Shown here one piece after another: positions 9,001 through 55,899 of a DNA stretch of 64,000 nt (its first letter is position 1; every line of letters begins with the position of its first letter). The position numbers and the translations under genes are program-made. Origin of the DNA: Cyanophora paradoxa CCMP329 (lineage: Eukaryota; Plantae; Glaucophyta); assembly GCA_004431415.1 (NCBI GenBank), contig QPMI01000048.1:62001-126000 (forward strand), written 5' to 3'. A model generated the notes under the pieces. The model worked only from the letters and a program-made list of their open reading frames with translations, ran no database searches and was not told the origin of the DNA.

Positions 9001-9940
9001 TTCTACGGCCCGCCCACCCCTCCGTCGCTGAGGTGGCCCCGCCCTAGATCTTGAGCCTAGGCCTAGGTCCTGACGCCCCGCGCCCCGTCCCGGCGCGCCC
9101 CGCCCCGCCCCCCGGCAGACGCTGGTGAGCCTGGCGGAGACGTTCGAATTCATCGACTGCTACCTCGACGCCGAGCCCCTCTTCAAGGCCCGCCCCGCCC
9201 CGCCCGAACCGCTTCTGGGACTCTATAAGACTAATTTCAATCTTATCATATGCGGGTCTTTGAAGCCATCCAGGCCTTCGCCTCGATGCTTCTGACTCTC
9301 TCCGACTCTTCGTTTGCGTGCGCGGTGCGCAGAGGGCGTACGAGATCCGCTGCGCGGCGCAGGGCCCCGGCCACAGGGACGCCATCCACGCCCTCGGCAG
9401 GCCCGCCCGCCCGCCTCCTTTCCCTCCCGTTCCCTACAGCTTTCTCTTCTGAACTCTAGGCCTTCGCGCGCAGCCTGGTGGAGTGCCAGATGAAGCAGGG
9501 GCGCGAGGAGGAGGCCATCGAGCTCCTCGAGAAGGTGCTCGACGTGCATAATTATTCCTTTCTACATAGCGGGTTCGCCTATGCATATGGCACGATAAGA
9601 TCAAATATTCAAGGTCTAAATAATCGGGGGACAAGATGGGGAGGGTGCTTGAGACATCGCTTACGTATGTACTGCCAGCGCATCGCTCAGAAAGATCGAA
9701 ACAATAGAAGTCGAAACGCCTAAACCGTTGAACGTGTCCTTATAATCAACACTAAACCATTTAGGAAATAGTCTGACTGGGGTGAGGGGGCAGGAGGTGG
9801 CGGCGGGCGGGGCGCAGGCGGAGGCGGCGGCGCCGCTGCTGTCGCGGGCGTACGAGGCGGCGGGGAAGGAGGAGGAGGGCGCCGCCATCCGCCGCGCCTA
9901 CGGCCTCCCCGCCGCCACCTCCCGCGCCAGCAACCTGTAG
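47..9940 (+). CDS. Multi-exon NACHT/NPHP3-like P-loop ATPase with C-terminal TPR array (5' end upstream of window)
   Basis: Hand-spliced exons give RCLLVLDGLDQL (Walker B, ~350-376), GLDWLP..RVVLSC, and ACSRRGLAEGEI. These are followed by repeated kinesin-light-chain-type TPRs (AELLLQRALGILEKGLGGGHPRVA, RALRVHEATLGPTHPRVARSLSNIA, AEPLLKRALEARELALGKEHALVAESL, RALAIREAASGPAHPSVAE). The last exon is 9794-9940 and ends in TAG. Confidence 0.85.
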
Positions 9941-10772: not shown

Positions 10773-11230
10773 TCATTCTCGATGATCGTCGACCTCCTCG
10801 AGATCGGCGCAGTGGCGACACGTGCAGAAGCGCCGGTCGGATGAGCGCGGCGCGCAGCCTGGGAAAGGGTAGATGCGGGGGCCTGGAAGCTTCTTGCCAC
10901 GTGTACTCGTCCTGCCGAACTCCGCGCCGAGCAGCCTCTTGACGCACGCCTCGCAGAAAACGTGCGTCTTGTCCTTCTGGAAAACGAACGCGCTCCGCTG
11001 CTTGAGCGAGGCTCCGCTGCGCGCGCCAGGCTCATGATCAAGTCGACGTCCCAGAAAAGATTTAACAGTTGCTAAACGGTTTTCGATATAGCTATATAGC
11101 GCGCGTGCGCGCGTGCGCGCGCGCACCAGTGGCACTGGCCATGGGCGACGTCGACATTCCCGTCGCGGTTTGGGTTCGAATTCGCCATCCGCCGTAGCTC
11201 CGCTCTTACTTCGGCTTTCCCCTTGGACAT
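10773..11230 (-). pseudogene. Truncated paralog of the zinc finger-GTPase gene (zinc finger only, two Cys lost)
   Basis: Exon 1 reads MSKGKAEVRAELRRMANSNPNRDGNVDVAHGQCH|C. Exon 2 reads GASLKQRSAFVFQKDKTHVFCEACVKRLLG..RIYPFPGCAPRSSDRRFCTCRHC..*. Same intron position as in 28321 and 48862. C>F and C>Y changes relative to those copies. Confidence 0.75.
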
Positions 11231-23196: not shown

Positions 23197-24319
23197 CTAG
23201 ATTTTCATTTCAAAAAGTGCTTCGTAGTGATTACACCGAAAGGCAATACGGATAGGCTCAATTCCATCTAAGTCTTTTGTTTTCGTTGAGTATTTAGTCA
23301 AGAGTGTGTAGCCTCCGTCAATGGTTTTGCTTGGGCTGTACAGCCAGATCGGCTGCTTGAGAATGAAGGACAAAATGCGAAGCTCAAGTTCGCCTCCTGA
23401 TCCGATCCTTGCATTAGAACGTATACGTAGATGGGAAAAAGAAGGAAGTCATGTACAGAAAAAAACCCTTACCCCAAACTTTCGGTTTGGAAATCTTTCT
23501 TGCATACTCGGTAGGTGTCATGACCCTGCCGTCTTCGAAGGGAACCTTATCATTCTTCAGGAAGTCTAGAATCTTAAAGTCGTCATTGCCAGTTGTGGCG
23601 GCCTGTTTCACAATGTCTCCGATCCGCGTCCTCAGCTCGTTGGCGATGGCGAATAACACTGGGCTGAACGCGTCCAGAGCATTCGGGAGGCAAAATACTA
23701 CGCCCTGCTTAACAGGTAGCTTCGCTTGGCAGCAAGCGTTGAAAAGGCAATCCCCGTCTCCTGCATTCCTGTGATTTTCATGATCATTACTCAAGGAGCT
23801 CCAAGTTTATAAATTTCGTTTGCGTACTTCACAGAGAACAAATCTGTCCTTGTCGACCCTGGTTTCTCCGGTTCCACATACGAAGACCCCATGAGAAGAA
23901 AAACGAGATCGCTTAATTCCTCCTCAGTCATAGACTGCCGCTCAACTGCGCGTACGCATGCACGTGCATTGCAACTTAGCCAACAGCGCAAATGGCTCAT
24001 TATCATGATCATCGAATCATAATCATCGGTTACAGCACGTACCATCGTAGTCATCGGTCTTTGTGGGTTTGCCGTTGACAAACTCGTAGGCCAAAATGCT
24101 GGCGCTGATCTCAGCTTTCACCTCATCTGTTAGTTCCGGGTGGACTCCCAGAATCTCGTACAGATGAGCTGAGGACAGCGATTGCTGAGACACCGGCTGC
24201 AGGATCGACCGCGAGTCCCCAATACCGATGCTAGCCTCGGGATGGATACGTGGAAGGACCGCTACGGGAGGCGCTGGCCCAGTCGACGTACGCGGCGACG
24301 TGCGACGTTTACGGGCCAT
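23197..24319 (-). CDS. OTU-family cysteine protease (deubiquitinase), 4 exons
   Basis: Spliced protein MARKRRTSPRTSTG...SVK|NAGDGDCLFNACCQ...EYARKISKPKVW|GGELELRILS...IRIAFRCNHYEALFEMKI*. Has the OTU GDGxCLF, WGGxxE and HY motifs with catalytic Cys and His intact. Confidence 0.88.
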
Positions 24320-27300
24320 CGTCCTGCACCTTCGCGCGAACGTGCCCCGCGCCGGAGCCAACAAGAGTGCAAGTGCTGTTTCCAGCGTTGTGCGACGCCC
24401 GCAAATTTATAGAAGGTCCAGCACTAGCCGTCCCGCCTAATTCTGTAAGCAGCCTAAGCGGATCGCGATCGGCGGAAGTACCTGGAGCTCGATGCCGGCG
24501 GACAGCTAATTATAATTCTTCGGCGACAATTCTGGGTTTTGCATAACACGGGACGCTGGAGGCTGCATCGGCACAACCGGGTTAAAAGTTTCCGCCGGCG
24601 GGCAACGCCGGCGAAATACAACAATGGCTTACAGCAACCGATTGTTAGGAATTTCGCCGCCGCGCGCTTGGAGTTCTAAGAGTGCTTCCAGCCATGTGAC
24701 CCGCGCCCCAGCTGCCGTCCGCCGAGTACACGTCCCGGCGTCGACAAAAGCGTATACGTGTATACTTTCGTAGGCATGCGCAAGCTTGCGCAGTCGGCCC
24801 GAGTCGCTGAGCTCAAAGACCGGCGTAATTCCGTAATGCTTTAGCATTAAATTATGCAATTACCGTGGTTTATATTAACGCGGTAGAACCTGGCACTCCG
24901 CTAGGCGAAATTCCCCGGAGCCGAATAACCGGGGGTACAAACTTCTCTGAGGCTTGCCAAAGGTTGCATGGCCCAGTGGGGCAGTGACAGGGGGCGTAAT
25001 GCATGCATGCATATGGGGCGACTCGCAGCAGAGCATTAAATAGCGCGGCGCCAAATGAACGCGGTGCGGCAGGATTGCGGCGCCTGGGGGCTCGCTTCGC
25101 CCTGGTCTCTCGAAACGACGGTTCTGCGATCGATATCAGCGCGTGCATTTGGTACCGCTTCATTACGTGAGCGCGTTATTTCAATGTTACACGGTTTGTG
25201 AAACGCGACGATTCCGGTGTCACTTGTTACTATCAGGTGTGAGACGTACAGATTCCGGCCCAGTCGACGCGGTTCGCGGCGACGTGCGACGGTTTCGTTT
25301 ACGGTCCATCGTCCTGCAGCTTCGTGCGCACGTGCCCCGGTGCCAACAAGAGTGCAAGTGCTGTTTCCAGCGTTGTGCGACGCCCGCAAATTTATAGAAG
25401 GTCCAGCACTAGCCGTCCCGCCTAATTCTGTAAGCAGCCTAAGCGGATCGCGATCGGCGGAAGTACCTGGAGCTCGATGCCGGCGGACAGCTAATTATAA
25501 TTCTTCGGCGACAATTCTGGGTTTTGCATAACACGGGACGCTGGAGGCTGCATCGGCACAACCGGGTTAAAAGTTTCCGCCGGCGGGCAACGCCGGCGAA
25601 ATACAACAATGGCTTACAGCAACCGATTGTTAGGAATTTCGCCGCCGCGCGCTTGGAGTTCTAAGAGTGCTTCCAGCCATGTGACCCGCGCCCAGCTGCC
25701 GTCCGCCGAGTACACGTCCCGGCGTCGACAAAAGCGTATACGTGTATACTTTCGTAGGCAAGCTTGCGCAGTCGGCCCGAGTCGCTGAGCTCAAAGACCG
25801 GCGTAATTCCGTAATGCTTTAGCATTAAATTATGCAATTACCGTGGTTTATATTAACGCGGTAGAACCTGGCACTCCGCTAGGCGAAATTCCCCGGAGCC
25901 GAATAACCGGGGGTACAAACTTCTCTGAGGCTTGCCAAAGGTTGCATGGCCCAGTGGGGCAGTGACAGGGGGCGTAATGCATGCATGCATATGGGGCGAC
26001 TCGCAGCAGAGCATTAAATAGCGCGGCGCCAAATGAACGCGGTGCGGCAGGATTGCGGCGCCTGGGGGCTCGCTTCGCCCTGGTCTCTCGAAACGACGGT
26101 TCTGCGATCGATATCAGCGCGTGCATTTGGTACCGCTTCATTACGTGAGCGCGTTATTTCAATGTTACACGGTTTGTGAAACGCGACGATTCCGGTGTCA
26201 CTTGTTACTATCAGGTGTGAGACGTACAGATTCCGGCCCAGTCGACGCGGTTCGCGGCGACGTGCGACGGTTTCGTTTACGGTCCATCGTCCTGCAGCTT
26301 CGTGCGCACGTGCCCCGGTGCCAACAAGAGTGCAAGTGCTGTTTCCAGCGTTTTGCGACGCCCGCAAATTTATAGAAGGTCCAGCACTAGCCGTCCCGCC
26401 TAATTCTGTAAGCAGCCTAAGCGGATCGCGATCGGCGGAAGTACCTGGAGCTCGATGCCGGCGGACAGCTAATTATAATTCTTCGGCGACAATTCTGGGT
26501 TTTGCATAACACGGGACGCTGGAGGCTGCATCGGCACAACCGGGTTAAAAGTTTCCGCCGGCGGGCAACGCCGGCGAAATACAACAATGGCTTACAGCAA
26601 CCGATTGTTAGGAATTTCGCCGCCGCGCGCTTGGAGTTCTAAGAGTGCTTCCAGCCATGTGACCCGCGCCCCAGCTGCCGTCCGCCGAGTACACGTCCCG
26701 GCGTCGACAAAAGCGTATACGTGTATACTTTCGTAGGCAAGCTTGCGCAGTCGGCCCGAGTCGCTGAGCTCAAAGACCGGCGTAATTCCGTAATGCTTTA
26801 GCATTAAATTATGCAATTACCGTGGTTTATATTAACGCGGTAGAACCTGGCACTCCGCTAGGCGAAATTCCCCGGAGCCGAATAACCGGGGGTACAAACT
26901 TCTCTGAGGCTTGCCAAAGGTTGCATGGCCCAGTGGGGCAGTGACAGGGGGCGTAATGCATGCATGCATATGGGGCGACTCGCAGCAGAGCATTAAATAG
27001 CGCGGCGCCAAATGAACGCGGTGCGGCAGGATTGCGGCGCCTGGGGGCTCGCTTCGCCCTGGTCTCTCGAAACGACGGTTCTGCGATCGATATCAGCGCG
27101 TGCATTTGGTACCGCTTCATTACGTGAGCGCGTTATTTCAATGTTACACGGTTTGTGAAACGCGACGATTCCGGTGTCACTTGTTACTATCAGGTGTGAG
27201 ACGTACAGATTCCGGCCCAGTCGACGCGGTTCGCGGCGACGTGCGACGGTTTCGTTTACGGTCCATCGTCCTGCAGCTTCGTGCGCACGTGCCCCGGTGC

Positions 27301-27875
27301 CAACAAGAGTGCAAGTGCTGTTTCCAGCGTTGTGCGACGCCCGCAAATTTATAGAAGGTCCAGCACTAGCCGTCCCGCCTAATTCTGTAAGCAGCCTAAG
27401 CGGATCGCGATCGGCGGAAGTACCTGGAGCTCGATGCCGGCGGACAGCTAATTATAATTCTTCGGCGACAATTCTGGGTTTTGCATAACACGGGACGCTG
27501 GAGGCTGCATCGGCACAACCGGGTTAAAAGTTTCCGCCGGCGGGCAACGCCGGCGAAATACAACAATGGCTTACAGCAACCGATTGTTAGGAATTTCGCC
27601 GCCGCGCGCTTGGAGTTCTAAGAGTGCTTCCAGCCATGTGACCCGCGCCCCAGCTGCCGTCCGCCGAGTACACGTCCCGGCGTCGACAAAAGCGTATACG
27701 TGTATACTTTCGTAGGCAAGCTTGCGCAGTCGGCCCGAGTCGCTGAGCTCAAAGACCGGCGTAATTACGTAATGCTTTAGCATTAAATTATGCAATTACC
27801 GTGGTTTATATTAACGCGGTAGAACCTGGCACTCCGCTAGGCGAAATTCCCCGGAGCCGAATAACCGGGGTACAA
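24276..27875. repeat. Tandem array of ~980-bp unit, ~3.7 copies
   Basis: Units start at 24276, 25257, 26235 and 27214 and are nearly identical. Each carries the conserved upstream motif. Units 2-4 also carry a variant OTU-gene start (minus strand MDRKRNRRTSPRTASTGPES). Confidence 0.95.
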
Positions 27876-28320: not shown

Positions 28321-31300
28321 ATGTTCAAGGGAAAAGATCCCGTGAGACCGGCACGGGAGGTGCACGCATACCTCCACCGCTACAGATCCAGCACGAAAAT
28401 CACGCGATCTTTTGTCGCCCAGTGCCACTGGTGCGTGCACGTGCACGTGCCACGGCACTCGCAATCTGTTCGGGCCTGCAGCTGTAGCTGCAACCCTGTT
28501 GCAAATTTTTAATTGAGCCTGGCGCACGCAGCGGAGCCTCGCTCAAGAAACGGAGCGCGTTCGTTTGCCAGAAGGACAAGACGCACGTCTTTTGCGAGGC
28601 GTGCGTCAAGTCGCTGCTCGGCGCGAACTTCGCCAAGACGCGGGGCAAGAAGCTTCCAGGGCCCCGCGTCTGCCCTGTCCCAGGCTGCGCGCCGCGCTCG
28701 TCCGTCCGGAATTACTGCACGTGTCGCCATTGCGCCGAGGACGATGGCAACGACGATACGGGGGCGGCTGAAGGTCCGCTCGCGATCGATACTGATCGCG
28801 ATCAATCAGATATCATTATAAAATGTTGCCGGCCTGACATGCACTTACCGTTGCCTGCAGCTCTCCTCGCCCTGCATGCACATGCGGCTGGGGCATGCGC
28901 AGGCGCCGGCGCAGCAGCGGACATTAACAGCGATCGCGACGAAGACAGATCCGGAGACGAGCTCGAGGTGCCCGGCTCAGAGCAGCACAGAAAGAGCCTC
29001 TCGCAATCGAAATTAACTAACACAAATATCATTGCGGCCGCAGTTATCCGCCGCCTCGGACTCGCTTAAGCTTCCGGGCTCCAAGGTGAAGACCATCCCC
29101 GAGGACGGGAAGACGTTCCTCAATGCAGCGTGCTGCAAAGTGCAGACGGCCAAGCAGCGCGCAGCTCTCGTCCGGCAGCTCAGCGCCTCGTTCTTCTCGC
29201 GCCTGGGTGGCGGGCTCGACTACACCGCCACCGTTCTCCTGCTCATGATCAACTTCCTGTTCATCATGGTCGCGGCTCTCCTCGACGACCCCACGACTCC
29301 CCGTGCGCCCTCTCGCGCTCTCGTCTATGGGCAGGCTTGTGTTCAGGCCTCGGCTTACGCATTGTTTCTGCAGTGGAAGTCGCGCAAGCCTTGAAGAACA
29401 TCTGCCTCGCGCCTCTCAAGCGCGCCGCTGAGAACGTGGGCGCTCGCTCGCTGTGGGCGCTTATCCTTGGGGAATCCGGGCACGGTTCGCTAATTCTTGA
29501 TCAGATATATATAGAGAGAAGTTTAATTCTGAGTTTCGGATTTGCATCTCACATTCTGATCATGAAACAGGCAAATCAACACTGGCGGGGGCCCTTTTCA
29601 AGCGTCATGCACCCCGCGACCCGCACTACTTAGAACAGCTTTGCGAGCGCTTCGGGATTCCCGTCGACATTCCGATGGTGCGTTAATAAAACTTATATCA
29701 TGTGACTCTACATCGATATCGACTTGCGCGTTGTGCGAATTATGGGAATCTTGTCCTGGCTAAATATGTCGCAGGCGTCTGCTTCCACGCCGGTTCCGGC
29801 ACGTGCGCGTCGCTGGCAGCTGCGATTCGATCTCGAAGGGAAAGTTGCGGCTGGGACCAGCGTCTACCTCCAGGTGTGATGTGATGTAAACTGCAGACGT
29901 ATAAATATGCAGTGCCTGCGAAATCGGTCGATAAACTGAAAATAAAGGCTGTTCAAGCATTTCTCTGCTCCAGTTGAATTCTATGGCACACATTTGCTCG
30001 GTACATCTTACACTTCTCGCCCCCGTCGTGCAGCTCGGCGTGATCGATTCGAAGTCGAAAACTACGCTGCCGCATTCCTTTGTTGAGGCGAATGGGTCAC
30101 TTCACTGCGTGCGTACATGATTTAAGCATTTTTTGTCCATCGCCGCAAGTTGACTGACTTCAATCGCAATCGATTGCAGCTACAAGTCACCACCGACAAA
30201 GAACTTTACAAGAGAAGCCCCGAGCACACCGAGAAGACGCATCGCCTGTTCTCAATCGGCACCTCGTTTTTCCGACTCTGGTGCAACGACGACGGAACCT
30301 GCTGCTTGCAGGTTCTCGCCCGGACCCTCGCAGACAAGAACCTGATCACCACGGGCGCCGGGAGCAGCGGAGAGCGCCTCCCGTTGGACGAAAGAGACAT
30401 CGACAAGGCCAATTTCGTTGGCTTTGCACGCTCTGGCTCCAGTCAAGAGCCGATCGCGAGGAAGCTCTCCTACTCGTGCAGACGAGCAACGGTTCGCGTT
30501 CTTAATTGTATAAACTTGCGCTCGCTTGCGCTTCATATTCTAGCATCATTTATTTAATCTTCTACACGGTTCAGCGCGCTTGCACTAATATACCAATCGC
30601 TGCAGGCGGCCCGCTTCGCCCTCGTACTCGTTGAAGGGAAGGGGAAGTCGGCGGAGGATGCGCCCGGCCACCTCGAGCTTCACGTCGATTCTGTGGACGG
30701 GCCGCGCGTCGGCGTCGGCAAGCTAAAGAAGGGCAACGTGGACGCTCTCGTCGTCGCCTCCAGTCCATCTTCGGTCCAGGCGGCGGACTTCTGCCCCATC
30801 TTTATGGTCAGTTAAAAGCCGTAGCCGAGTCTTTTGCTGTCCCCGAACTAAGGATCAGCTACGAACAGGTCAACTCGAAGGAAAGTCGTGAGCCGCAGTC
30901 TGGAGGCTCATCGGGCGCAGAAGCCCTTTCCAAAATCCGCGCCCAGTTCTGCAGAACGGAATCGTGGAACAAGCAGCCCCTTCCTCCGTTGGAGTACGAG
31001 AAGTTCAAAGAGTTCGACACTCAGAGGGGAATCGCTCCTTGCGGGAAGCAGCATCGATACACCACTATCGTGCCCGAGGTGCGACGTTCTGCGTTCTGCT
31101 TACGCTGCACAGCTTTCAAATATTTTCGAGCTCACTGTTCGTGCATATGTGACTTGATGCGAAGGCACTGCGGAGTTGCGGGCCGACGGACACGCCAGCG
31201 TTGACGGTTGAATGGCGTGACGCGAGCTCGCTCTGGTCTCTAATCAAGAAAGGGCTCCATCTTCATGCTGAACCGATGCCGCCGACACCGCTCTCCACAG

Positions 31301-34300
31301 ACGAGGACTCGCCGAGTGCACAGGTGATCAAGGAACGGCAGCGGGTCGGAGGAGAGATCGCTGCGTCCTTTGGTCGCGACTGCAATCATCCAGACTACCG
31401 TCGCTTAAAAACCCTCGAGCAAACGCCTGGTGCGCAATTCGTGATCTTGAAATCGAACCCAATTTTTCCGCTTTCGGCTCTTGTAATTGATGGTTTTATT
31501 TTGCGGGTGCAGCTGACCTCGCCCTCCCTGTCGACATGGTGGACCGTTTGGGCAAGCGCGAGATCTTCGAAGTGTACAGCACTGTTTCCGAGGGCGTCCT
31601 TCTGGGCCTTCGCATTGCCGGCATCATGTGAGCCTCCGGATCCCCGCGACTGATACATACACACACAATGCAAAGCGCTTTTATTTAATCACGATGGACA
31701 TTGCAGGACAGCGACGGCGTTTCCTGGACTTCTGTGCACTCCCCTGGAGCTGGAGGCGACTGGCGTACGGCGTCTGCCCGCCATCACCTTCAACCTTCCC
31801 ACTCGGCTCCCGAAGGGCCTCGACGAAATGGTTGTCATCAGCACGCCGGTGCGCACTTGAATTCGATATTCAGACCTCTGCGATTATTTCTTAGTATTCG
31901 TTTAATACTGACTGCGGGCCCGGGCCGGGTCCTAGGGTGCGAAAACCGACAGAGATCTCCCGCCGTTCGAGCAGCGGCTCGTGAACGAGTCCGCGAACAT
32001 CGACGTCGACACGGCTCTTCTCGTGGCTAAAGAGCGGGCAATGACCCACGGGACTGTGCGCTGGCGCCCCCTGCAAATGAGGGACGTCGACCGCTGCGTC
32101 TGCCTGTTTGTGACCGCTTCGGCAGGTTGGCGACCAGCTTCGGAGGGGCGGGTCGGGCGGCACGAGCTCCGCCGTCTGGCACAATTATCTCCAGCGCAGC
32201 ATGCCATTTGGTGCGCTGCGAGTTGCAATCGGCGTGGAATTAGCGCTCTATTGCTGGTAACGTTGCAGCCCGCACCTTATATTAATCATGAGCCGCGTAC
32301 ATGTGCAGTGGCCGTGTGCAATCCCGACAAGGAGACGGAGGAAGATCCTGATCACATTCAGGAGGGGGTCAGTTTTTTGACCAACTTTTATTTCGAGTGC
32401 AGCTAAACTGACATGTTTCATTTCGGCAGGCGCAGATAATTGCCCAAACACTTTGGAGCCTCGCAGAGAAGACGCTCCTGAGGGATGCAGACGTGGAATG
32501 GGAGGAGCGGGTTGAAGACTGCAAACAACGGACCCTCTGCACGGGTGCGATTCGGATCCGTCAGTCTGCTCTATGCATACGCGCTGATCATGAAGCCCGC
32601 TATCCGGCTTATAAACAGGCGGATCTTTCACAAATCCCGACGCCGCCTGGTGATTATGAGGCCACTCTAAAGCAATCTTTGGAATAAATTAACTTGTACA
32701 TTGTTGTGGCAGGCTCGGAGTTCTGTGGGAGCAACTGCCGCTTCTGACCACCGCCTCCCGCACCGAACGCCTCCTTCGCATTGTAGAGGCCTTTCGCGCC
32801 GAGCTCCCTGCGTTGCTCGAAGTTTTGAATCCGGTGCGTCGTTGCCTTTGGAAGATTATCATGATCATCAACATAATATAATTTACGATCCCGAGCATAT
32901 GCATGCTTAATATTCGCGGTCTGTATGCAGGCGGTAGCTCTCGCAGAGCTCAACAATATCCCTCTTGACATCAAGGACCTGTGCTGGAGGCATGCCGGAC
33001 AGCAGATCATTGCCCGACTCGAGCGGCTCTTTGAAGAGAGCGACACCGGTGCCCTGCCTGGGCTTTCGGGCGACGATCAAGGCAAGGGGCTGTGGCTCGC
33101 CCAGCAGAACATCGCAGCTGGGATGGCTTTGCAGCAGGCGAGCGGTATCCTGGAGCGCGCAGCGGACATCGTCGCTCGGGAGACGACTTTGCCGGCACTC
33201 GTCACGAATCGCTTCTTCGAGCTCAATCGCAATCAGGTGCTCCACATGTACAGCTGTAAATGGTCACGAGCTCCTCGAGCTCTATTCACCAACTCGATAC
33301 ATTGCAATTGCTTTCGCAGAAAGTCAAGGCCGCGTTATCGAGCGTGGGCTCCAAGAAGCAAGCAGAGGCGTTCCTCTCTTACTGGGCGAAATGCGCCGAC
33401 CCGGAAGACGGCGGACCGGTGTGCTCGGACGCTCGTTAATTTCCCCAATTTCCCACCTCACGACGAGAAACGTCGCGCAGCTCGGCAACGTCCTGGTCGG
33501 AGACCTCGTGGCGAGGGCAGTGCAGGCTCTGGCAGAGCAAGCCAAATCCGGCGAGGGAAATACGGCCACCCTTTACGACGTCCTCATCGCGTTTGTTGAA
33601 GGCGCCTCACGGCGCCACGCTGACGCCTTCCTGGTGCGAAATAAATCACCGAGCGGTTCTCATACTGGCGGGTCTATTCGCGGGCACGTCGTAATTTGGT
33701 GCGCGCAGAACCTTGAGCCACCCCCGGGACTGGGCGAAGAGGAACTGAAGTGCTGGAACACACTTACCGAGACGTTCCACTGCCTGTTCCCAATGTGCGC
33801 CGGCTGCTCTTATTATGATTAATTTTGGGTTGATTTATCAAAAACATTAATCTCGTTCCGCTTCCGAAGGCATGCGCGAATGAAGCTCCGAGTTGTCGTA
33901 CACAGCATTCTCGACAAGTGCGCAAGTTCTTAAATATAAGAACTAGCTTTAGTGCACACCGTGAAATTTGATCTTGCGACGTTGTAGAATGCTTGCTGGC
34001 GACCAAACAAAGAGTGAGCATATAAGTTTCGTCTGGGGTGCAATCAGCAGAATTCTCGCAAGCCTTGTCTTGGTGCACCAGAGTTTTTTCTTGCGTTTTC
34101 TCGTAGGCGAAATTCTATATAGCTAATTATAATCCGTGCGCTTCTCGCAGGTGGATCTCCTCCCACCCAAGCCCAACTCCAAAGCAAGACAGCCAGCATC
34201 CTTTCAGGTTCCCTATTGATATCGCTATCGCTAGTGTAAACTGGCTTTGTTCTTGTTTCGTTGCTGGTTGACGCGCTTCTCGGGCCCGGGGCATCGATAT

Positions 34301-35409
34301 CCGCACGCGCAGCTTTCTTTCCTTGAGAAGCGGCTGCAACAACTGGCGGCCGCCGGCAATTCAACCACAGGGGGATGGCCGTGGCCTGCAGACCTTGGAG
34401 AAAAGTTCACTGTTGCGGTGCGATGTGCCAACGTTAACGTGCAATGTCTCGCCACCAGTATGACAAGCCTGCAATGCTGACTTCACTGTTGGGCTGCAGG
34501 GGCGGCCTTCAGGCTCCACTTTCGCAAGCCGCGGCACGCGCTCCGTAAGCTAAAATAGACCAACTTCCGAAGTTCAACATCACGTGCACCGCGTGCACGT
34601 GCTCATGACAGTTTGCAGGGGCCGTCAAACCCTGCGCTGGCGAACGAGATTCTGGAAGGGGCGGGCCCTGACGCACCTCCCGGCCTCCATAATTGCGTCT
34701 CCCGCTACCTGAGAGACGCAGTGCGCGCTCGGGGATCTCTTTCAAGTTCAGATTCGAGCGCCGCGGCGCTATATATGTATTAATGAAATGATTTTTCAAC
34801 CAGATGGGCGACGTCGGACAAAGCATTTCGAGCGAGATATTCATGCAGGTTATGGATATTTGCGCCTCCGATGTCCAAACCCTATCCCGGTAGGAATTCT
34901 CGCACGCTTGCAGGCTGCAGGCTGCAACTTCGTGAACGTCGCAACTGATCTAGATTTGCGGTTTTTCACAGGCCGCGAACAAACCTGGCGCAGTATTTCG
35001 GACCGGCTCTTGCGCCACTGGTCCGCGCACACTGCGGCGTAAGGGCGATCACCGCCGCCCTCACGAAGCTCCAAGCCCAGTGCGAGATTTAAACCTACAG
35101 CTGCTGTTGGCGGTTGAACTGCGGCGCTGGCTGACTCGCTGTACACTGATCAGGCTGCGGGACGAACGCCAGCAAGCTGACGTTCCCGTGGGCGCGGCGC
35201 GGAAGGCTTTCGCGAAAGCTCTTGCTATTCAGTCAGACGATGCATTCGAACCCGAGGTCCTGATCGACGAGGACCGCGATGCCGATCGCGAGGACCCCGC
35301 TGCGGCGCCGGCCGCGGGAACTTCAAATTCGGATGCCTCTGCCAAACGCGGTGATTCTACCAAATTTACAGGTACCGGTGCTCAGGAGTTTGCTGGAATT
35401 GCAAACTGA
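28321..35409 (+). CDS. Multi-exon Cys-rich zinc finger + dynamin-like P-loop GTPase + helical C-terminus, copy 1
   Basis: N-terminus QCH|CGASLKKRSAFVCQKDKTHVFCEACVKSLLG..CPVPGC..YCTCRHC. Walker A ALILGESGH|GKSTL spans intron 29485-29570. G2-like ASTPVP, G3-like VVISTP|G (31848/31936), DTALLVA, and G4-like AVCNPDK. Ends ...QEFAGIAN*. Confidence 0.7.
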
Positions 35410-35489
35410 CCGATATCTATATTAGGACTCGCAGGCTCCACTCGCACGCGTACCACCCCTTTGACGTTCCTCCGGCATGCGCAGGCCTC

Positions 35490-36110
35490 GGTCCGCGCCC
35501 CCCCCCCCCCCCCCTCCTTCCGCCCCCCCGCCCCCGACTCTTCCTCACCCCGGTACCCCCGCAGGGGCTGGCCGCGCCTGTACGCCTCCGGATCCGCGAC
35601 GTCGCGCCGCCGGGGCCGGCCCGCGCGGTCCGCTTGCTGCCGCCGCCGCCCTCCGCCCCCGGCTGAGCGCGCCGCAGCCGGCGGCCGTGCATCCGGGCAG
35701 CGCACACAATGAGGCCCGCGGCAAGGCGCCCGCCAAGCCCGCCAAGGTGCTCCGCTGCGCGCCCCGCGGCGCGTGCCCCCGCCGCACTGACGTCCCTGCC
35801 CCCCCGCCCCCCCCCCCCCCCCCCCCCCCCCCCCGAGCAGGCTGTACTCCAGAACGACGCCGCTCCCCTGCGGCGGGAGGAGCCGCGGGACGAGGAGCAG
35901 GAGGGCATCCAGTTCGCCTACGCCCTCGACGCCAGCGCCAGAGAGGCGCTGGCGGCCTCAACACAGGCCTCCTCCGCCCCCGCGCCCGCCAAGGTACCAG
36001 TGCTAGCACGCTTTATTTGCCGCGCGCCCCGGCCCACGCGCCCCGCGCGCCCTGGCCCGCCCCGCTGATCGTGATGGCCCGGCCGCCGCAGAGACGCCGC
36101 ACTAGCGGCG
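35490..36110 (+). repeat. Gene A 3' fragment (copy 2) inserted downstream of GTPase copy 1
   Basis: Matches ~21630-22170. The flanks align to the uninterrupted 3' region of GTPase copy 2 (~55900-56040). Confidence 0.75.
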
Positions 36111-37164: not shown

Positions 37165-38238
37165 GGGGGCGGGGGCAGGGACGTCAGTGCGGGGGGGCAC
37201 GCGCCCGCGGGGCGCGCAGCGGAGCACCTTGGCGGGCTTGGCGGGCGCCTTGCCGCGGGCCTCGTTGCGCGCGCTGCCCGGATGCACGGCCGCCGGCTGC
37301 GGCGCGCTCGGCCGGGGGCGGAGGGGCGGCGGCGGCAGCAAGCGGACCGCGCGGGCCGGCGGCGCGACGTTGCGGAGGGGTACAGGCGCGGCCGGCCCCT
37401 GCGGGGGTACCGGGGTGAGGAAGAGTCGGGGGGGGGCGGAAGGAGGGGGGGGCGCGGAAGGGCGGGAGTGGGCGCGGACCGGGGCCGCTCGGCGGTGCGA
37501 GCACACGACGCGCTCGCTGGCGAAGCTGCCCGCGACGAGCTCGCCGGGGGCCCGGGCCTGCGAGACGCCCGCTCGGCCGGCGCCGCGAGGGGCGCGGGCG
37601 GCGCGGCGCACGGGCTCGAGGGATCGAGGTCGGAGCGGCGGGTCCGACGCTCTGCTGCGCTTGCCGCGCGGCCGACCGCGCCGGCGCCGGGGAGCGCGAC
37701 GGGCGCGACGAGGCGCCCGCCGCGGGCCGCTGCGGGCGGCGCCGAAGAGCTCCAGCGCCCCGCCCCGACGCCGGCCGCGCTGCGCCCGCCGCCCTGCGCG
37801 GCCGGCTGAGCGGGCGGCGCGAGTGGGTGGGGCGGGTCGGGCGCACGGGCGTGCAGCGGAGGCAGGCGGGGCCGGCGCCGCGGCGCGTGGCCGCGGCCGC
37901 CAGGGGCGCCTCGCTCAGGCCCTCGATGCGGCACACCTTGACGCCCTCGGGTCTGCGCCCCGTCGGACGGGGCGGCGGGAAGGGCGGCGGGGCGCACGGG
38001 CGAGGGGCGACCCGACGCATCCGCGCGAGGACGCGCCGCGAACGGCACGCAGCCCGGGGCGCTGCCCGAAGCCCTGCAGCCAGAGGGACCCTTCGCTCGC
38101 GAACGCGAATCCGGCCCCGCGCTCCTCGGGCGTCGGCAGAGGCGGCGCGTGAGGGCGGCGGCGGCGGGCGGCGCACCAGGAGGAACGCGAACGTCTCGAG
38201 CTGCGCCGCCGCGCTGCAGTCCTCCGGGCGCGCGCCGC

Positions 38239-38269
<31 letters not shown>

Positions 38270-38989
38270 GCCGCACCTCAGCGCAGAACGCCATGGGCTT
38301 CAGCACCCGGGCGCAGCCGTCGGGCGGCGCGAGGGGCCGCTTCGGGGCGCCCGCGCCCGCGCGTTGCACGCCGAGCTCGCGCCGGCGGCCGCCGGCGGCC
38401 GCCCTTGGCCGCCCGCCGGTCGGATGCACTCCACGAAGTGGTCAGGGCCCTGCCGCAGTGCCGTAAGCCTCGCGCAGCGCTCTCGGCCCGCCGGCGCGCG
38501 CGCGCACCACGCCCCCTGCGGGCGGGACGAGGCGGACTTTTTTTTCGCCAAACGAGACGTCCACGGCCGACGAGACCTCCCACCGAGTCCGCCCGTCGAT
38601 CAGCGCAACTGCGACGGCCTTCGGGCCGCTCCGCGCGCACACCCGCCCGCTCTCCTTGCTCTGCGCGCGGAGATCGGCGACTGGCGACCAGCAGGCGCTC
38701 CAGGTGGAGTGCACCGGCGACGCGGCGAGCGCGGAGGCCGCTCCATTGCTGACGGAGAAGCAGTCCGCATTACTTAGTTGATCAGCGCACGAATTGCTGG
38801 CGCCGCGGAGATGAGTGGCCAACGCGCAGCGCCGGCGTGCGGCAAGCTCGTGGTTCTGCGCGGGCTGTGTGCGACTGTCAGACGTGCGGCATTGGTCGCG
38901 GGTGTGGGTTGAGCGCCGGGCATCGAGGTCCGGAGCCATGGAGGGCGCGTTCGTGTGGGAAAGGGTTGCGAGGCGGACCCGCCTTCGTC
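37165..38989 (-). pseudogene. Gene A copy 3 (3'-truncated), left arm of head-to-head inverted repeat
   Basis: Reverse complement of 39203-~41010, separated by a 213-bp spacer (38990-39202). Confidence 0.65.
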
Positions 38990-39202: not shown

Positions 39203-39919
39203 GACGAAGGCGGGTCCGCCTCGCAACCCCTTCCCACACGAACGCGCCCTCCATGGCTCCGGACCTCGATGCCCGGCAAGCTCAACCCACACCTGCGACC
39301 AATGCCGCACGTCTGACAGTCGCGCACAGCCCGCGCAGAATCACGAGGTCGCCGCACGCCGGCGCTGCGCGTTGGCCTCTCATCTCCGCGGCGCCGGCAA
39401 TTCGTGCGCTGATCAACTAAGTAATGCGGACTGCTTCTCCGTCAGCAATGGAGCGGCCTCCGCGCTCGCCGCGTCGCCGGTGCACTCCACCTGGAGTGCC
39501 TGCTGGCCGCCAGTCGCCGATCTCCGCGCGCAGAGCGAGGAGAGCGGGCGGGTGTGCACGCGGAGCGGCCCGAAGGCCGTCGCATTCGCGCTGAACGACG
39601 GGCGGACTCGGTGGGAGGTCTCGTCGGCTGTGGACGCCTCGCCCAGCGAAAAAAAAGTCCGCCTCGTCCCGCCCGCAGGGGGCGTGGTGCGCGCGCGCGC
39701 CGGCGGGCCGAGAGCGCTGCGCGAAGCTAACGGCACTGCGGCAGGGCCCTGACCACTTCGTGGAGTGCATCCGACCTGCAGGCGGCCGCGGGCGGCCGCC
39801 GGCGGCCGCCGGCGCGAGCTCGGCGTGCAACGCGCGGGCGCGGGCGCCCCGAAGCGGACCCTCGCGCCGCCCGACGGCTGCGCCCGTGCGCGGAAGCCCA
39901 TGGCGTTCTCCGCTGAGGT

Positions 39920-39959
<40 letters not shown>

Positions 39960-48861: not shown

Positions 48862-51800
48862 ATGCCAAGGGAGAAAGATCTCGTCAGACCAGTGCGGGAG
48901 GTGCACGCATACCTCCACTGCTACAGATCCAGCACGAAAAGCTCGCGATCCTATGTCGCCCAGTGCCACTGGTGCGTGCACGTGAACGTGACACGGCTCT
49001 CGCAATCCGTTCGGGCCTGCAGCTGTAGCTGCAACCCAGTTGCGATTTATTAATTGAGCCTGGCGCACGCAGCGGAGCCTCGCTCAAGAAACGGAGCGCG
49101 TTCGTTTGCCAGAAGGACAAGACGCACGTCTTTTGCGAGGCGTGCGTCAAGTCGCTGCTCGGCTCGAACTTCGCCAAGACGCGGGGCAAGAAGCTTCGAG
49201 GGCACCGCGTCTGCCCTGTCCCAGGCTGCGCGCCGCGCTCGTCCGTCCGGACCTTCTGCACTTGTCGCCATTGCGCCGAGGATCGTGGCAACGACGATGC
49301 GGGGGCGGCTGAAGGTCCGCTCGATTCTGATCGTGACCGATCAACATGATTAATATTACTTTAATTTCCAGCCTGACCTGTGATCATGACATGCATATGC
49401 CATTAATTCATAAATATAAATAAGGGGCTTGCAACTCTTATAATCAGGCGCAGCCACGGCTACGGATCCGACGGCAGACACCATACGCATCGCGATCGAT
49501 ATCGACAGCAAACATGACAAAGACGGATCCGGATCTGGAGATGATGGCGAGGTGCCCGGCCCCGCACAGAACAGCACAAAAAGAGCCTCTCGCAATCGAA
49601 ATCAACTAACACAAATATCATTGCGGCCGCAGTTATCCGCCGCCTCGGACTCGCTTAAGCTTCCGGGCTCCAAGGTGAAGACCATCCCCGAGGACGGGAA
49701 GACGTTCCTCAATGCAGCGTGCTGCAAAGTGCAGACGGCCAAGCAGCGCGCAGCTCTCGTCCGGCAGCTCAGCGCCTCGTTCTTCTCGCGCCTGGGTGGC
49801 GGGCTCGACTACACCGCCACCGTCCTCCTGCTCATGATCAACTTCCTGTTCATCATGGTCGCGGCTCTCCTCGACGACCCCACGACTCCCCGTGCGCCCT
49901 CTCGCGCTCTCGTCTATGGGCAGGCTTGTGTTCAGGCCTCGGCTTACGCATTGTTTCTGCAGTGGAGGTCGCGCAAGCCTTGAAGAAAATCTGCCTCGCG
50001 CCTCTCAAGCGCGCCGCTGAGAACGTGGGCGCTCGCTCGCTGTGGGCGCTCATCCTTGGGGAATCCGGGCACGGTTCGCTAATTCTTGATCAGATAGAGA
50101 GAAGTCTAATTCTGAGTTTCGGAATTGCATCTCACATTCTGAAACAGGCAAATCAACACTGGCGGGGGCCCTTTTCAAGCGCCATGCACCCCGCGATCCG
50201 CACTACTTAGAACAGCTTTGCGAGCGCTTCGGGGTCCCCGTCGACATTCCGATGGTGCGTTAATAAAACTTATATCATGTGACTCTACATCGACTTTCGC
50301 GTTGTGCGAATTATGGGAATCTTGTCCTGACTAAATATGTCGCAGGCGTCTGCTTCCACGCCGGTTCCGGCACGTGCGCGTCGCTGGCAGCTGCGATTCG
50401 ATCTCGAAGGGAAAGTTGCGGCTGGGACCAGCGTCTACCTCCAGGTGTGATGTGATGTAAACTGCAGACGTATAAATATGCAGTGCCTGCGAAATCGGTC
50501 GATAAACTGAAAATAAAGGCTGTTCAAGCATTTCTCTGCTCCATGGCCAGTTGAATTCTATGGCACATATTTGTTCGCTACATCTTACACTCCTCGCCCC
50601 TCGTGCAGCTTGGGGTGATCGATTCGAAGTCGAAAACTACGCTGCCGCATTCCTTTGTCGAGGCGAATGGGTCACTCCACTGCGTGCGTACACGATCCAT
50701 GCATATGTGTCTGATGATCATGAATTTCGAATCAACGCCGCACGTGACCGAATTTTTGTATTACAATCGATTGCAGCTGCAAGTCACCACCGACAAAGAC
50801 CTTTACAAGAGAAGCCCCGAGCACACCGAGAAGACGCATCGCCTTTTCTCAATCGGCACCTCGTTTTTCCGACTCTGGTGGAACGACGACGGAACCTGCT
50901 GCTTGCAGGTTCTCGCCCGGACCCTCGCAGACAAGAGCCTGATTACCATGGGCGCCGGGAGTAGCGGAGAGCGCCTCCCGTTGGACGAAAGAGACATCGA
51001 CAAGGCCAATTTCGTTGGCTTTGCACGCTCTGGCTCCAGTCAAGAGCCGAGGAAGCTCTCCTACTCGTGCAGACGAGCTACGGTTCGCGTTCTTAATTAT
51101 GGAAACTTGCGCTCGCTTGCACTCAATAATCTAACATCATGAATGTAATAATCTACACGGTTCAGCGCGCGTGCACTAATATATCACTCGCTGCAGGCGG
51201 CCCGCTTCGCCCTCGTACTCGTTGAAGGGAAGGGGAAGTCGGCGGAGGATGCGCCCGGCCACCTCGAGCTTTACGTCGATTCTGTGGACGGGCCGCGCGT
51301 CGGCGTCGGCAAGCTGAAGAAGGGCAACGTGGACGCTCTCGTCGTCGCCTCCAGTCCATCTTCGGTCCAGGCGGCGACCTTCTGCCCCATCTTTATGGTC
51401 AGTTAAAAACCGTAGCCGAGTCTTTTGCTGTCCCCGAACTAAGGATCAGCTACGAACAGGTCAACTCGAAGGAAAGTCGTGAGCCGCAGTCTGGAGGCTC
51501 ATCGGGCGCAGAAGCCCTTTCCAAAATCCGCGCCCAGTTCTGCAGAACGGAATCGTGGAACAAGCAGCCCCTTCCTCCGTTGGAGTACGAGAAGTTCAAA
51601 GAGTTCGACACCCAGAGGGGAATCGCTCCTTGCGGGAAGCAGCATCGATACACCACTATCGTGGCCGAGGTGCGACGTTCTGCGTTCTGCTTACGCTGCA
51701 CAGCTTTCAAGTATTTTTGAGCTCACTGTACGGGTATATGTGACTTGATGCGAAGGCACTGCGGAGTTGCGGGCCGACGGACACGCCAGCGTTGACGGTT

Positions 51801-54800
51801 GAATGGCGTGACGCGAGCTCGCTCTGGTCTCTAATCAAGAAAGGGCTCCATCTTCATGCTGAACCGATGCCGCCGACACCGCTCTCCACAGACGAGGACT
51901 CGCCGAGTGCACAGGTGATCAAGGAACGAAAGCTGGTCGGAGGAGAGATCGCTGCGTCCTTTGGTCGCGACTGCAATCATCCAGACTACCGCCGCTTAAG
52001 AACCCTCGAGCAAACGCCTGGTGCGCAATTTGTGATCTTGAAATTGAACCCAATTTTTCCGCTTTCGGCTCTTGTAATTGATGGTTTTATTTTGCGGGTG
52101 CAGCTGACCTCACCCTCCCTGTCGACATGGTGGACCGTTTGGGCAAGCGCGAGATCTTCGAAGTGTACAGCACTGCTTCCGAGGGCGTCCTTCTGGGCCT
52201 TCGCATTGCCGGCATCATGTGAGCCTCCGGATCCCCGCGACTGATGCATATGCATGCCGCAAAGCGCTTTTGAATCACGATGGACATTGCAGGACAGCGA
52301 CGGCGTTTCCTGGACTTCTGTGCACTCCCCTGGAGCTGGAGGCGACTGGCGTACGGCGTCTGCCCGCCATCACCTTCAACCTTCCCACTCGGCTCCCGAA
52401 GGGCCTCGACGAAATGGTTGTCATCAGCACGCCGGTGCGCACTTGAATTCGATATTCAGACCTCTGCGATTATTTCTTAGTATTCGTTTAATATTGACTG
52501 CGGGCCCGGGCCGGGTCCTAGGGTGCGAAAACCGACAGAGATCTCCCGCCGTTCGAGCAGCGGCTCGTGAACGAGTCCGCGAACATCGACGTCGACACGG
52601 CTCTTCTCGTGGCTAAAGAGCGAGCAATGACCCACGGGACCGTGCGCTGGCGCCCCATGAACATGAGGCGCCGCTTTGTTTGCCTGGCCTGCTTGTACAT
52701 GTGACCGCTTCGGCAGGTTGGCGACCAGCTTCGGAGGGGCGGGTCGGGCGGCACGAGCTCCACCGTCTGGCACAATTATCTGCATCGCAGCATGCCGTTC
52801 GGTGCGTTGCGAGTTGCAATCGGCGTGGAATTAGCGCTCTATTGCTGGTAACGTTGCAGCCCGCACCTTATATCAATCATGAGCCGCGTACATGTGCAGT
52901 GGCCGTGTGCAATCCCGACAAGGAGATGGAGGAAGATCCTGATCACATTCAGGAAGGGGTGAGTTCTTTTGACCGACGTTTATTCCAGCCTGGTCAACAT
53001 TGCAATTGAACATTTCGGCAGGCGCGAATTGTTGCCGAAACGCTTTGGACACTTGCAGAAGAGACACTTCCGGGAGCGGGGGATGCAGATCTAGACGCCG
53101 AATCGGTGTCGACGTCGCGAGTTGAAGACTGCAAACAACGGACCCTCTGCACGGGTGCGATTCGAATCCGTCAGTCGGCTCTATGCATACGCGCTGATCA
53201 TGAAGCCCGCTCTCCGGCTTATAAACAGGCGGATCTTTCACAAATCCCGACGCCGCCTGGTGATTATGAGGCCACTCTAAAGCACTCTTTGGAATAAATT
53301 AACTTGTACATTGTTGTGGCAGGCTCGGAGTTCTGTGGGAGCAGCTGCCGCTTCTGACCACCGCCTCCCGCACTGAACGCCTCCTTCGCATTGTAGAGGC
53401 CTTTCGTGCCGAGCTCCCTGCGTTGCTCGAAGTTTTGAATCCGGTGCGTCGTTGCCTGCAAGCATATAATTTATGATCTTGACCATGATTAATATTTGCC
53501 GTCCGTGCACTCATGCAGGCGGTAGCTCTCGCGGAGCTCAACAACATCCCCCTAGACATCAAGGACCTGTGCTGGAGGCACGCCGGGCAGCAGATCATTG
53601 CCCGACTCAAGAGACTCCATTATGAGAGTGAAACCCTGCCTGGGCTTTCGGGCAACGATCCAGGCAAGGGGCTGTGGCTCGCCCAGCAGAACATCGCAGC
53701 TGGGATAGCTTCGCAGCAGGCGAGCGGTATCCTGGAGCGTGCAGCGGGCATCGTCGCTCGGGTGACGACTTTGCCGGCACTCGTCACGAATCGCTTCTTC
53801 GAGCTCAATCGCAATCAGGTGCTCCACATGTACAGCTGTAAATGGTCACGAGCTCCTCGAGCTCTATTCACCAACTCGATACATTGCAATTGCTTTCGCA
53901 GAAAGTCAAGGCCGCGTTATCGAGCGTGGGCTCCAAGAAGCAAGCGGAGGCGTTCCTCTCTTACTGGGCGAAATGCGCCGACCCGGAAGACAGCGGACCA
54001 GTGCGCTCGGACGCTCGTTAATTTCCCCAATTTCCCACCTCACGACGAGAAACGGCGCGCAGCTCGGCAACGTCCTGGTCGGAGACCTCGTGGCGAAGGC
54101 AGCGCAGGCTCTGGCAGAGCAAGCCAAGTCCGGCGAGGGAAATACGGCCACCCTTTACGACGTCCTCATCGCGTTTGTTGAAGGCGCCTCACGGCGTCAC
54201 GCTGACTCCTTCCTGGTGCGAAATAAATCACCGAGCGGTTCTCATACTGGCGGGTCTATTCGCGGGCACGTCGTAATTTGGTGCGCGCAGAACCTTGAGC
54301 CACCCCCGGGACTGGGCGAAGAGGAACTGAAGTGCTGGAACACACTCATTGAAAATTTCCATTGTCTTTTCCCAATGTGCGCTTGGTCTGGTCACGATTT
54401 TGTGACGCCTTCAAACTAGACTCGTAACTTTGATTACGAAGGCATGCGCGGATGAAGCTTCGAGTTGTCGTGCACAAGATTTGTGACGAGTGCGAATCAG
54501 CTGCACCTTCGAGGTTAAGAATAACTTCTAATCACCGGTTAAACCAGGATGCTCTCTGGCGACGAGAAAAAAAGCGAGCACATCAAGTCCGTGTGTAATG
54601 TGACAGGCAGATTGCTCGCGGGTCTCTTTCTGGTGCATTTCCGCTTACGCGTTTCTTTTGAGCGCGCTCACCTTCTGCGAATTCGAAGGTGGATCCCCTT
54701 CCCCTCAATCCAGACTCCAAAGCAAGAGAGCCAGCCCCGTTCAAGGTTTAAGCAGATATATCGCTTTTGCTTCCTCATTGCTTTGTCCTCAAAGCAGCCC

Positions 54801-55899
54801 AGTTCGCCTACCTCGGACAACGGATTGAACAGCTGGCAGCTGCCGGCAATGCAACCACAGGGGGATGGCCGTGGCCTGCAGACCTTGGAGAAAAGTTCAC
54901 TGTTGCGGTGCGATGTGCCAACGTTAACGTGCAATGTCTCGCCACCAGTATGACAAGCCTGCAATGCTGACTTCACTGTTGGGCTGCAGGGGCGGCCTAC
55001 AGGCTCCACTTTCGCAAGCCGCGGCACGCGCTCCGTAAGCTAAAATAGACCAACTTCCGAAGTTCAACATCACGTGCACCGGTACCTCGTGCACGTGCTC
55101 ATGACAGTTTGCAGGGGCCGTCAAACCCTGCGCTGGCGAACGAGATTCTGGAAGGGGCGGGCCCTGACGCACCTCCCGGCCTCCACAACTGCGTCTCCCG
55201 CTACCTGAGAGACGCAGTGCGCGCTCGGGGATCTCTTCCGAGTTCAGATTCGAGCGCTATATATATATATTAATGAAATGATTCGTCTACCAGATGGGCA
55301 CCATCGGCATTGGAATTTCGAGTAAGATTTCCACGCAGTTTATGGAGATCTGCGCCTCCGACATTCGAACTCTCTCGCGGTAGGAAGTCTCGCACGCTTG
55401 CAGACTGCAGACTGCAACTTCGTAAAAGTCGCAATTGATCTAGATCTGCGATTTTGCACAGGCCGCGAACAAACCTGGCGCAGTATTTTGGACCGGCGCT
55501 TGCGCCACTGGTCCGCGCCCATTGCGCTGTAAAGGCTATCACCACCGCCCTCACGAAGCTCCAAGCCCAGTGCGAGATTTAAATCTACAGCTGCTGTTGG
55601 CGGTTGAACTGCGGCGCTGGCTGACTCGCTGTACACCGATCAGGCTGCGGGACGAACGCCAGCAAGCTGACATTTCCGTGGGCGCGGCGCGGAAAGCTTT
55701 CGCGAAAGCTCTTGCTATTCAGTCGGACAATGAATTCGAACCCGAGGTCCTGATCGACGAGGACGCCGACAGCGATGCCGAGGCCCCCGCAGTTAACGTT
55801 GCGCCTGCAGCAGGAGCTTCGAATTCCGCTTCCGCGGGCGGTGACACTGCCAAAGGTACCGGTGCTCAGGAGCTCCCCGCTGCTGAAGTCGCAAGTTGA
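48862..55899 (+). CDS. Zinc finger + dynamin-like GTPase, copy 2
   Basis: Same exon structure and motifs as 28321-35409 (GESGH|GKSTL, VVISTP|G, AVCNPDK). Starts MPREKDLVRPVRE and ends ..QELPAAEVAS*. Confidence 0.7.

Follow-up and report, generated by a model that had tools for sequence, protein, structure and literature searches.

The locus considered here raises the question of what kind of protein is encoded by an intron-rich gene of the glaucophyte alga Cyanophora paradoxa in which a Cys/His zinc finger appears to be joined to a P-loop nucleoside triphosphatase (NTPase), and whether the two modules belong to a single gene at all. The gene, hereinafter copy A, occupies 28321..35409 on the forward strand of the window, that is, the 64,000-nucleotide stretch of contig QPMI01000048.1 that we analyzed, and runs from ATG to TGA over about 33 exons and about 1,450-1,480 codons. 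A preliminary description of this DNA had interpreted its product as a CDCA7-type, chromatin-reading finger fused to a dynamin-like GTPase. The evidence presented below indicates that copy A is a real, selectively constrained C. paradoxa gene and supports the fusion of finger and NTPase within it. As to the nature of the protein, on balance we favor the view of a large P-loop NTPase, an orphan that is possibly anchored in a membrane and whose nucleotide state would be linked to a RING-like module acting in interaction or as a ligase.

Structure and authenticity of the fused gene

The window is a stretch of GC-rich DNA with many short introns; those of copy A average 84 nt, the published mean for the Cyanophora genome being 86 nt (PMC6704402), and its exons have 61% GC (71% at third codon positions, GC3) vs 48% in the introns, both intron length and this contrast in GC being usual for the genome. 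All the motifs quoted in the preliminary description were recovered on the forward strand where it had located them. As read from the sequence, the Cys/His finger is encoded by exons 1-2 (28321-28430 and 28532-28773), with the start codon at 28321, the C-H-C element split across intron 1, between the end of exon 1 at 28430 and the start of exon 2 at 28532, and the FCEAC, CPVPGC and CTCRHC elements falling in exon 2 on the same strand (28590-28604, 28671-28688 and 28716-28733, respectively). Exon 3 (28861..28967, the acceptor in copy A being uncertain, at 28861 or later) encodes a variable acidic linker, and exon 4 (29044..29302), which shows high GC3 in frame, encodes the sole strongly hydrophobic helix of the protein (29221-29283). 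The P-loop module follows in exons 5-8 (29374..30108) and comprises the Walker A motif GESGH|GKST (29469-29484 plus 29571-29581), which is split by an 86-nt GT-AG intron (29485-29570; donor GTTCGC, acceptor CAG), a Thr-Pro element (ASTPVP, 29781-29798), a predicted β-hairpin and a strand ending in Asp (LGVIDS). Exons 9-13 (30180..31628), about 370 codons, contain no motif or family recognizable by Pfam or by a HMMER scan with exon 9, and exons 14-17 (31708..32367) carry the G3-like VVISTP|G (31831-31848 plus 31936-31938) and the G4-like AVCNPDK (32311-32331), neither of which is canonical. The C-terminal tail, about 550 codons with an acidic end, is encoded by exons 18-33 (32430..35409) and is predicted to be helical. 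The order of the protein is hence a Cys/His zinc module, an acidic linker, a hydrophobic helix, a P-loop NTPase, a featureless stretch of about 370 residues and a putatively helical tail of about 550 residues. A Pfam scan of 20 stop-free exon pieces of copy A, taken singly, returned nothing useful, which is consistent with the earlier remark that introns hide these motifs.

The window contains a second copy of the gene, copy B (48862..55899, forward strand), identified by self-BLAST and MAFFT alignment; the two are about 93% identical overall and 20 kb apart. Copy B underlies a public gene model that maps to it at 100% identity (P0001; EukProt EP00741 Cyanophora paradoxa tig00000189_g14327.t1; 1447 residues, 34 exons), so that the protein is already known, as an uncharacterized and unnamed model in a public proteome. 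The public gene models were generated with BRAKER1/Augustus using hints from RNA sequencing (PMC6704402). All our whole-protein tests were run on this model, to which residue numbers refer throughout, and copy A was searched exon by exon. The public model joins the finger exons, both halves of the Walker A motif and the later motifs exactly as the preliminary description had done. When it was projected onto copy A through the nucleotide alignment, 33 of the 33 shared exon frames were found to be open, with no stop codon. Summed over exons, the ratio of nonsynonymous to synonymous divergence between the copies (dN/dS) is 0.36, and the synonymous divergence (pS, 0.12) approximates the divergence of the introns (0.11). 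Nineteen junctions mapped at the exact exon border have GT...AG introns with the same hexamers in both copies, the commonest donor being GTGCG[CTA]; the other 13 mapped 1-2 nt off, and at 10 of these the flanking hexamers are again the same in both. The region over which the copies are similar extends from about 70 nt upstream of their common ATG to the common stop codon (35407-35409 in copy A), which has the same aligned position in both. As both copies keep an open terminal exon up to this stop, we take 35409 as the true end of the gene. The joins made by the public model, the open frames, the dN/dS ratio and the correspondence of synonymous and intron divergence together point to a real gene under constraint. 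The proposed fusion of a finger with a P-loop is likewise supported, being in frame in two paralogs and in the public gene model.

It might still be argued that the finger and NTPase exons belong to different transcripts that annotation has brought together, or that we are dealing with a non-functional or unexpressed duplicate. The junctions come from a gene predictor and from frame logic only, and the genome paper itself cautions that its models require curation (PMC6704402). Moreover, the last exon of the public model (56501-56644) lies outside the duplicated unit, about 600 bp past the shared stop, and looks wrong; it was probably joined in error or belongs to a different repeated unit. These readings are countered by the extent of the duplicated unit, which reaches from just upstream of the shared ATG to the shared stop, by the linker exons 3-4, across which the frame from finger to NTPase is preserved in each copy in spite of the heavy divergence of exon 3, and by a dN/dS of 0.36 with no broken frame in either copy. 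We regard an artefact or an unexpressed locus as highly improbable.

Divergence of the copies and six-nucleotide insertions

The gene is present as two intact copies plus one decayed fragment. The latter is a third copy of the finger exon on the reverse strand (10785..11015), in which two zinc-ligand cysteines have been lost, to Phe and Tyr; it is part of a rearranged relic at 9.8-12.3 kb, which combines the finger exon with pieces of the upstream and downstream flanks of copy B. Next to the relic, 9833-9937 is a 94% copy of the questionable last exon of the public model. The alignment of the two intact copies is a mosaic, in which long stretches, introns included, are 97-100% identical and others, exons 3, 18, 26-28 and 31 among them, differ strongly, the most diverged exons lying in the C-terminal tail. 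This pattern fits an old duplication that has been partly homogenized by gene conversion. Diversifying selection was considered for the diverged exon patches and rejected, dN being lower than dS there.

Many of the in-frame indels between the copies are insertions of a peculiar type. Of the 47 indels, 20 are exactly 6 nt long, 12 of these being in introns, and at least seven clean examples show a trinucleotide X in one of the copies and X-revcomp(X)-X in the other, i.e. X, its reverse complement (X') and X again. One such case, in exon 9 at 30451, adds two codons. A tandem array upstream of copy A, described further below, polarizes the event as an insertion: at 24766-24790 one of its units reads GCA-TGC-GCA and the other three read GCA. 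Nine-mers of the form X-X'-X number 34-37 per gene copy vs about 2 expected, and their density per kb in exons is a third of that in introns; those in exons are concentrated in the linker and in the acidic tail, with four insertion scars in the exon 3 linker. Because 6-nt X-X'-X insertions dominate the intron indels too, we have withdrawn an argument that took exon indels in multiples of three as a sign of coding constraint.

The N-terminal zinc finger

The finger (residues 1-117) contains 11 Cys and 2 His in the pattern C-x-C, x11, C, x5, H, x2, C-x2-C, x22, C-x4-C, x9, C-x-C-x2-C, and every one of these Cys and His residues is kept between copies A and B despite seven amino acid changes in exon 2. 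The preliminary description had assigned it to the CDCA7-type zf-4CXXC_R1 fingers. The two do share the FCxxC...CP...CxCxxC stretch, which resembles part of the CDCA7 motif, and a complement of about 11 Cys. The finger under consideration, in contrast, starts with CxC, has a His ligand in RING position 4 and has only two of the four CXXC pairs (C58-x2-C61 and C101-x2-C104), the others being CxC and C-x4-C. In Pfam, residues 1-125 had no match at E<=1, be it to zf-4CXXC_R1, to a RING model or to any other family, and the exon 2 piece of copy A had no Pfam match, zf-4CXXC_R1 included; a phmmer search of the Protein Data Bank (PDB) with the finger listed no CDCA7 chain. The CDCA7 assignment could thus not be sustained.

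The leads that were obtained lie on the side of the RING fingers. The phmmer search of the PDB gave a weak alignment with the RING of RNF4 over the C-x-H-x-F-C-x2-C core (per-domain E 2-3), and a language-model (Atlas) search gave low-score leads to the RING clan (0.81). When compared with the C3HC4 RING consensus (C-x2-C, x9-39, C, x1-3, H, x2-3, C-x2-C, x4-48, C-x2-C), the finger fits at 4 of 7 positions, the misfits being C-x1-C, C-x5-H and C-x4-C. Weak as these leads are, they suggest a ligand spacing that is RING-like rather than CDCA7-like, and the finger may be described as a divergent RING-like, cross-brace module with an extra C-x-C-x2-C knuckle, a description that is offered as a lead and not as a family assignment.

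The P-loop NTPase module

The P-loop of the NTPase (the G1 motif, GxxxxGK[ST]) is canonical and is present as GESGHGKST at residues 269-277. It is followed by the Thr-Pro element and then by two would-be hairpin strands, the second of which ends in the Asp of LGVIDS about 75 residues after Walker A; LGVIDS thereby appears to sit where a TRAFAC-type core usually has its Walker B strand. None of the Pfam matches to this region reaches threshold, and none extends outside residues 251-310. The best is to AAA_16 (E=7e-5, 23.8 bits vs a cut-off of 32.6), with further ones to Sigma54_activat, ABC_tran, nSTAND3, RsgA, GTP_EFTU and Septin, of which the last three (E 0.16-0.33) cover the P-loop only. 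Neither residues 480-900 nor 900-1447 are matched by any Pfam model, and the PADLOC, NCBIfam and PHROGs models gave only noise at the level of the P-loop. A language-model search gave weak leads (<=0.87) to fragments of MMR_HSR1, Dynamin_N, AIG1 and Virul_Fac, which at such scores are leads only by the tool's own calibration. An internal duplication test found no similarity between residues 236-600 and 640-960, and an arrangement of two tandem G-like domains was accordingly rejected.

The preliminary description had proposed a dynamin-superfamily GTPase with a split G domain, joined to a CDCA7-type DNA- or chromatin-reading finger and acting in defense. Its G1 and G2 would be at residues 265-315, and inserted sequence of about 450 residues would separate them from G3 (STPG) and G4 (NPDK) at 778-856. 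Several features speak for it: a hydrophobic strand precedes each of VVISTPG and FVAVCNPDK, which at 75 residues apart come close to the G3-G4 spacing in dynamins; the language-model leads, low in score, include MMR_HSR1, Dynamin_N, AIG1 and Virul_Fac; the tail is predicted, with low confidence, to be helical; and the FCxxC...CP...CxCxxC pattern is similar to part of the CDCA7 motif. With the dynamin superfamily (BDLP, Mx and mitofusin) the protein shares its large size, a GxxxxGKST P-loop, a T-x-x-P element behind helix 1, a TPG motif and an extended, putatively helical C-terminal part. Against the model, neither Dynamin_N nor any related G-domain family is matched at E<=1 by the public model or its parts: residues 480-900 have no such match, and those of residues 230-480 are confined to the P-loop. 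Regular-expression searches found no DxxG after a hydrophobic strand anywhere in the public model, the candidates for G3 being LGVIDSKS, which lacks the Gly, and VVISTPG, in which Ser replaces the Asp, nor any [NT]KxD, the only N-x-D variants being WWNDD and CNPDK. The proposed G3 would come about 465 residues after G2, with AVCNPDK and VVISTPG lying about 505 and 430 residues, respectively, beyond LGVIDS, which is the better-placed candidate for Walker B. We know of no GTPase with a 450-residue insert between G2 and G3. The premise that a long G2-G3 insert is typical of dynamins is also incorrect, for dynamins have their stalk after the G domain and not within it. Its chromatin-reading part fares no better, given the missing zf-4CXXC_R1 match, the two CXXC pairs and the PDB search without a CDCA7 chain. 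We consider this model improbable. The protein is not to be filed under dynamins or CDCA7 readers, and neither label should be passed on.

With AAA_16 as the best match, a second alternative is a STAND-type ATPase with a layout resembling the NLRs. The RING-like finger would be its N-terminal effector, the NTPase its center and the helical tail its C-terminal sensor, and the gene would belong to a small, diversifying tandem family. The AAA_16 match takes in the helix preceding the strand of the P-loop, a feature also of STAND proteins (MalT/AfsR type), and nSTAND3 is among the other matches; the three-part layout of effector, NTPase and helical tail fits, as does a local multi-copy family with tandem copies and a relic, and the two copies differ most in their C-terminal exons. 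However, the AAA_16 match is below the Pfam cut-off and covers 60 of 167 profile positions, no Walker B of the form hhhhD[DE] occurs in the public model 60-90 residues after Walker A, and neither sensor 1 nor the GxP motif is identifiable. The PADLOC models added nothing beyond the P-loop, the tail is only putatively a helical repeat, and the diverged exons, which keep dN<dS, look old and unconverted, not positively selected. We judge this alternative as a whole to be rather unlikely. The NTPase domain itself may be a TRAFAC GTPase or a STAND/AAA_16-type ATPase.

Linker, hydrophobic helix and tail

In the linker encoded by exon 3, 15 of 27 aligned codons differ between the copies, and the reading frame is still maintained in both. 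The hydrophobic segment that follows it in exon 4 is 21 residues long, with a Kyte-Doolittle mean over 19 residues of up to 2.67, and is the only segment of such strong hydrophobicity in the public model; it could possibly serve as a membrane anchor. For the regions further downstream, structure prediction with AlphaFold was run on single sequences, there being no homologs to align. Residues 236-620 gave a model with a predicted local distance difference test score (pLDDT) of 38.7, which is unusable, and residues 860-1399 gave an all-helical one, equally unusable, with a pLDDT of 36.2. The tail of about 550 residues is accordingly only predicted, with low confidence, to be helical.

Search for relatives

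With exon 9 (107 residues) as the query, an exhaustive HMMER scan against 1.84 billion cluster representatives returned only the public model itself and one spurious match. The latter, a bacterial repeat protein (P0002), was rejected as a chance match, with 13 short repeats that fit FF..F..N..G.CCL..V. Word-index protein searches found nothing with exon 9, only the public model itself when the whole of it was used (candidates of 796-2532 residues), and nothing with the NTPase part (candidates of 386-1227 residues, E<=10). Scans of viral and metagenome contigs and a tblastn search of phages revealed no relatives, and an exact-sequence contig look-up of the public model found nothing on record. 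The only match of the public model in the phmmer search of the PDB, ropporin, was set aside as chance. The protein thus appears to be an orphan, with no detectable relatives outside C. paradoxa, a conclusion that is exhaustive for exon 9 only, searches of lower sensitivity having been used for the rest of the protein.

A candidate nucleotide-driven switch coupled to a RING-like module

Taken together, these features would be explained by a P-loop NTPase with a canonical Walker A motif, a Thr-Pro element and an Asp-ending strand at TRAFAC-type spacing, and no canonical guanine-specificity motifs. Such a protein may act as a nucleotide-driven switch or mechanoenzyme, and the state of the switch could be coupled to the RING-like module, which would function in protein interaction or as a ubiquitin ligase, perhaps at a membrane. 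The domain order and selective constraint are direct readings of the gene; enzymatic class, ligase activity and membrane anchoring are what we infer from them. In favor of a real gene, the X-X'-X scars are depleted threefold in exons; as regards the finger, its ligands, all kept in copies A and B, have suffered two losses in the relic. Several points weigh against the reading as a whole: the public model is a computational one, with junctions supported by gene prediction and frame logic; no family match reaches a curated threshold; the AlphaFold models (pLDDT 36-39) being unusable, the P-loop fold is deduced from Walker A and its flanks; the finger, P-loop and tail were covered by length-limited word-index searches only, exon 9 alone being searched exhaustively; and a single membrane crossing by the exon 4 helix would awkwardly place the finger and the NTPase on opposite sides.

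A similar known arrangement is that of proteins with a RING finger and a large GTPase, such as RNF112/ZNF179, which combines a RING finger, a GB1/RHD3-type G domain and membrane segments. The Cyanophora protein would share with it the order of an N-terminal, putatively cross-brace-type zinc finger and a large P-loop NTPase, together with a hydrophobic segment. As to the differences, no sequence similarity of the Cyanophora protein to any other protein was detected, its RING spacing is off at three places, its G3 and G4 are non-canonical and its hydrophobic helix precedes the NTPase and does not follow it. A bolder version of the favored scheme would see in it a new class of large GTPase, restricted to glaucophytes and anchored in a membrane. 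In this version, about 450 residues would be inserted between switch I and a Ser-Thr-Pro-Gly G3, the GTPase would be coupled to a finger that is a RING-like ubiquitin ligase, and gene conversion would homogenize the small tandem family, which might serve in self/non-self recognition; this we think quite improbable. Were the NTPase class settled, the protein would represent a lineage-specific way of linking a RING-like finger with a large nucleotide switch, in an alga that branches deeply and in which hardly anything comparable has been studied. The gene is one of many orphan multidomain genes in the Cyanophora genome, and no function can be read from its sequence.

Repeats flanking the gene copies

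Both copies lie in AT-richer islands (about 55% GC) within a background of 65-79% GC. Interleaved with them, in both orientations, is a GC-rich (70-79%) repeat family, found at 13881-15189, 21225-22484, 35486-36004, 37165-38989, 39203-41491 and 45664-47980, some long open reading frames of which are proline-rich. Pfam detected no transposase or other domain in the long reading frames of these flanking repeats, and neither a transposase nor terminal repeats nor any other hint of mobility was found at the locus; as the repeat reading frames carry no domain, nothing supports the presence of a mobile element. Directly upstream of copy A is the tandem array mentioned above (24276-27875), which consists of about 3.7 copies of a unit of about 980 bp that are 98-99% identical; copy B has no equivalent of this array upstream, and its function is not evident. 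A second, shorter tandem repeat, with a unit of 78 bp in 5.1 copies (96% matches), lies at 44481-44877 inside a GC-rich region that resembles an open reading frame.

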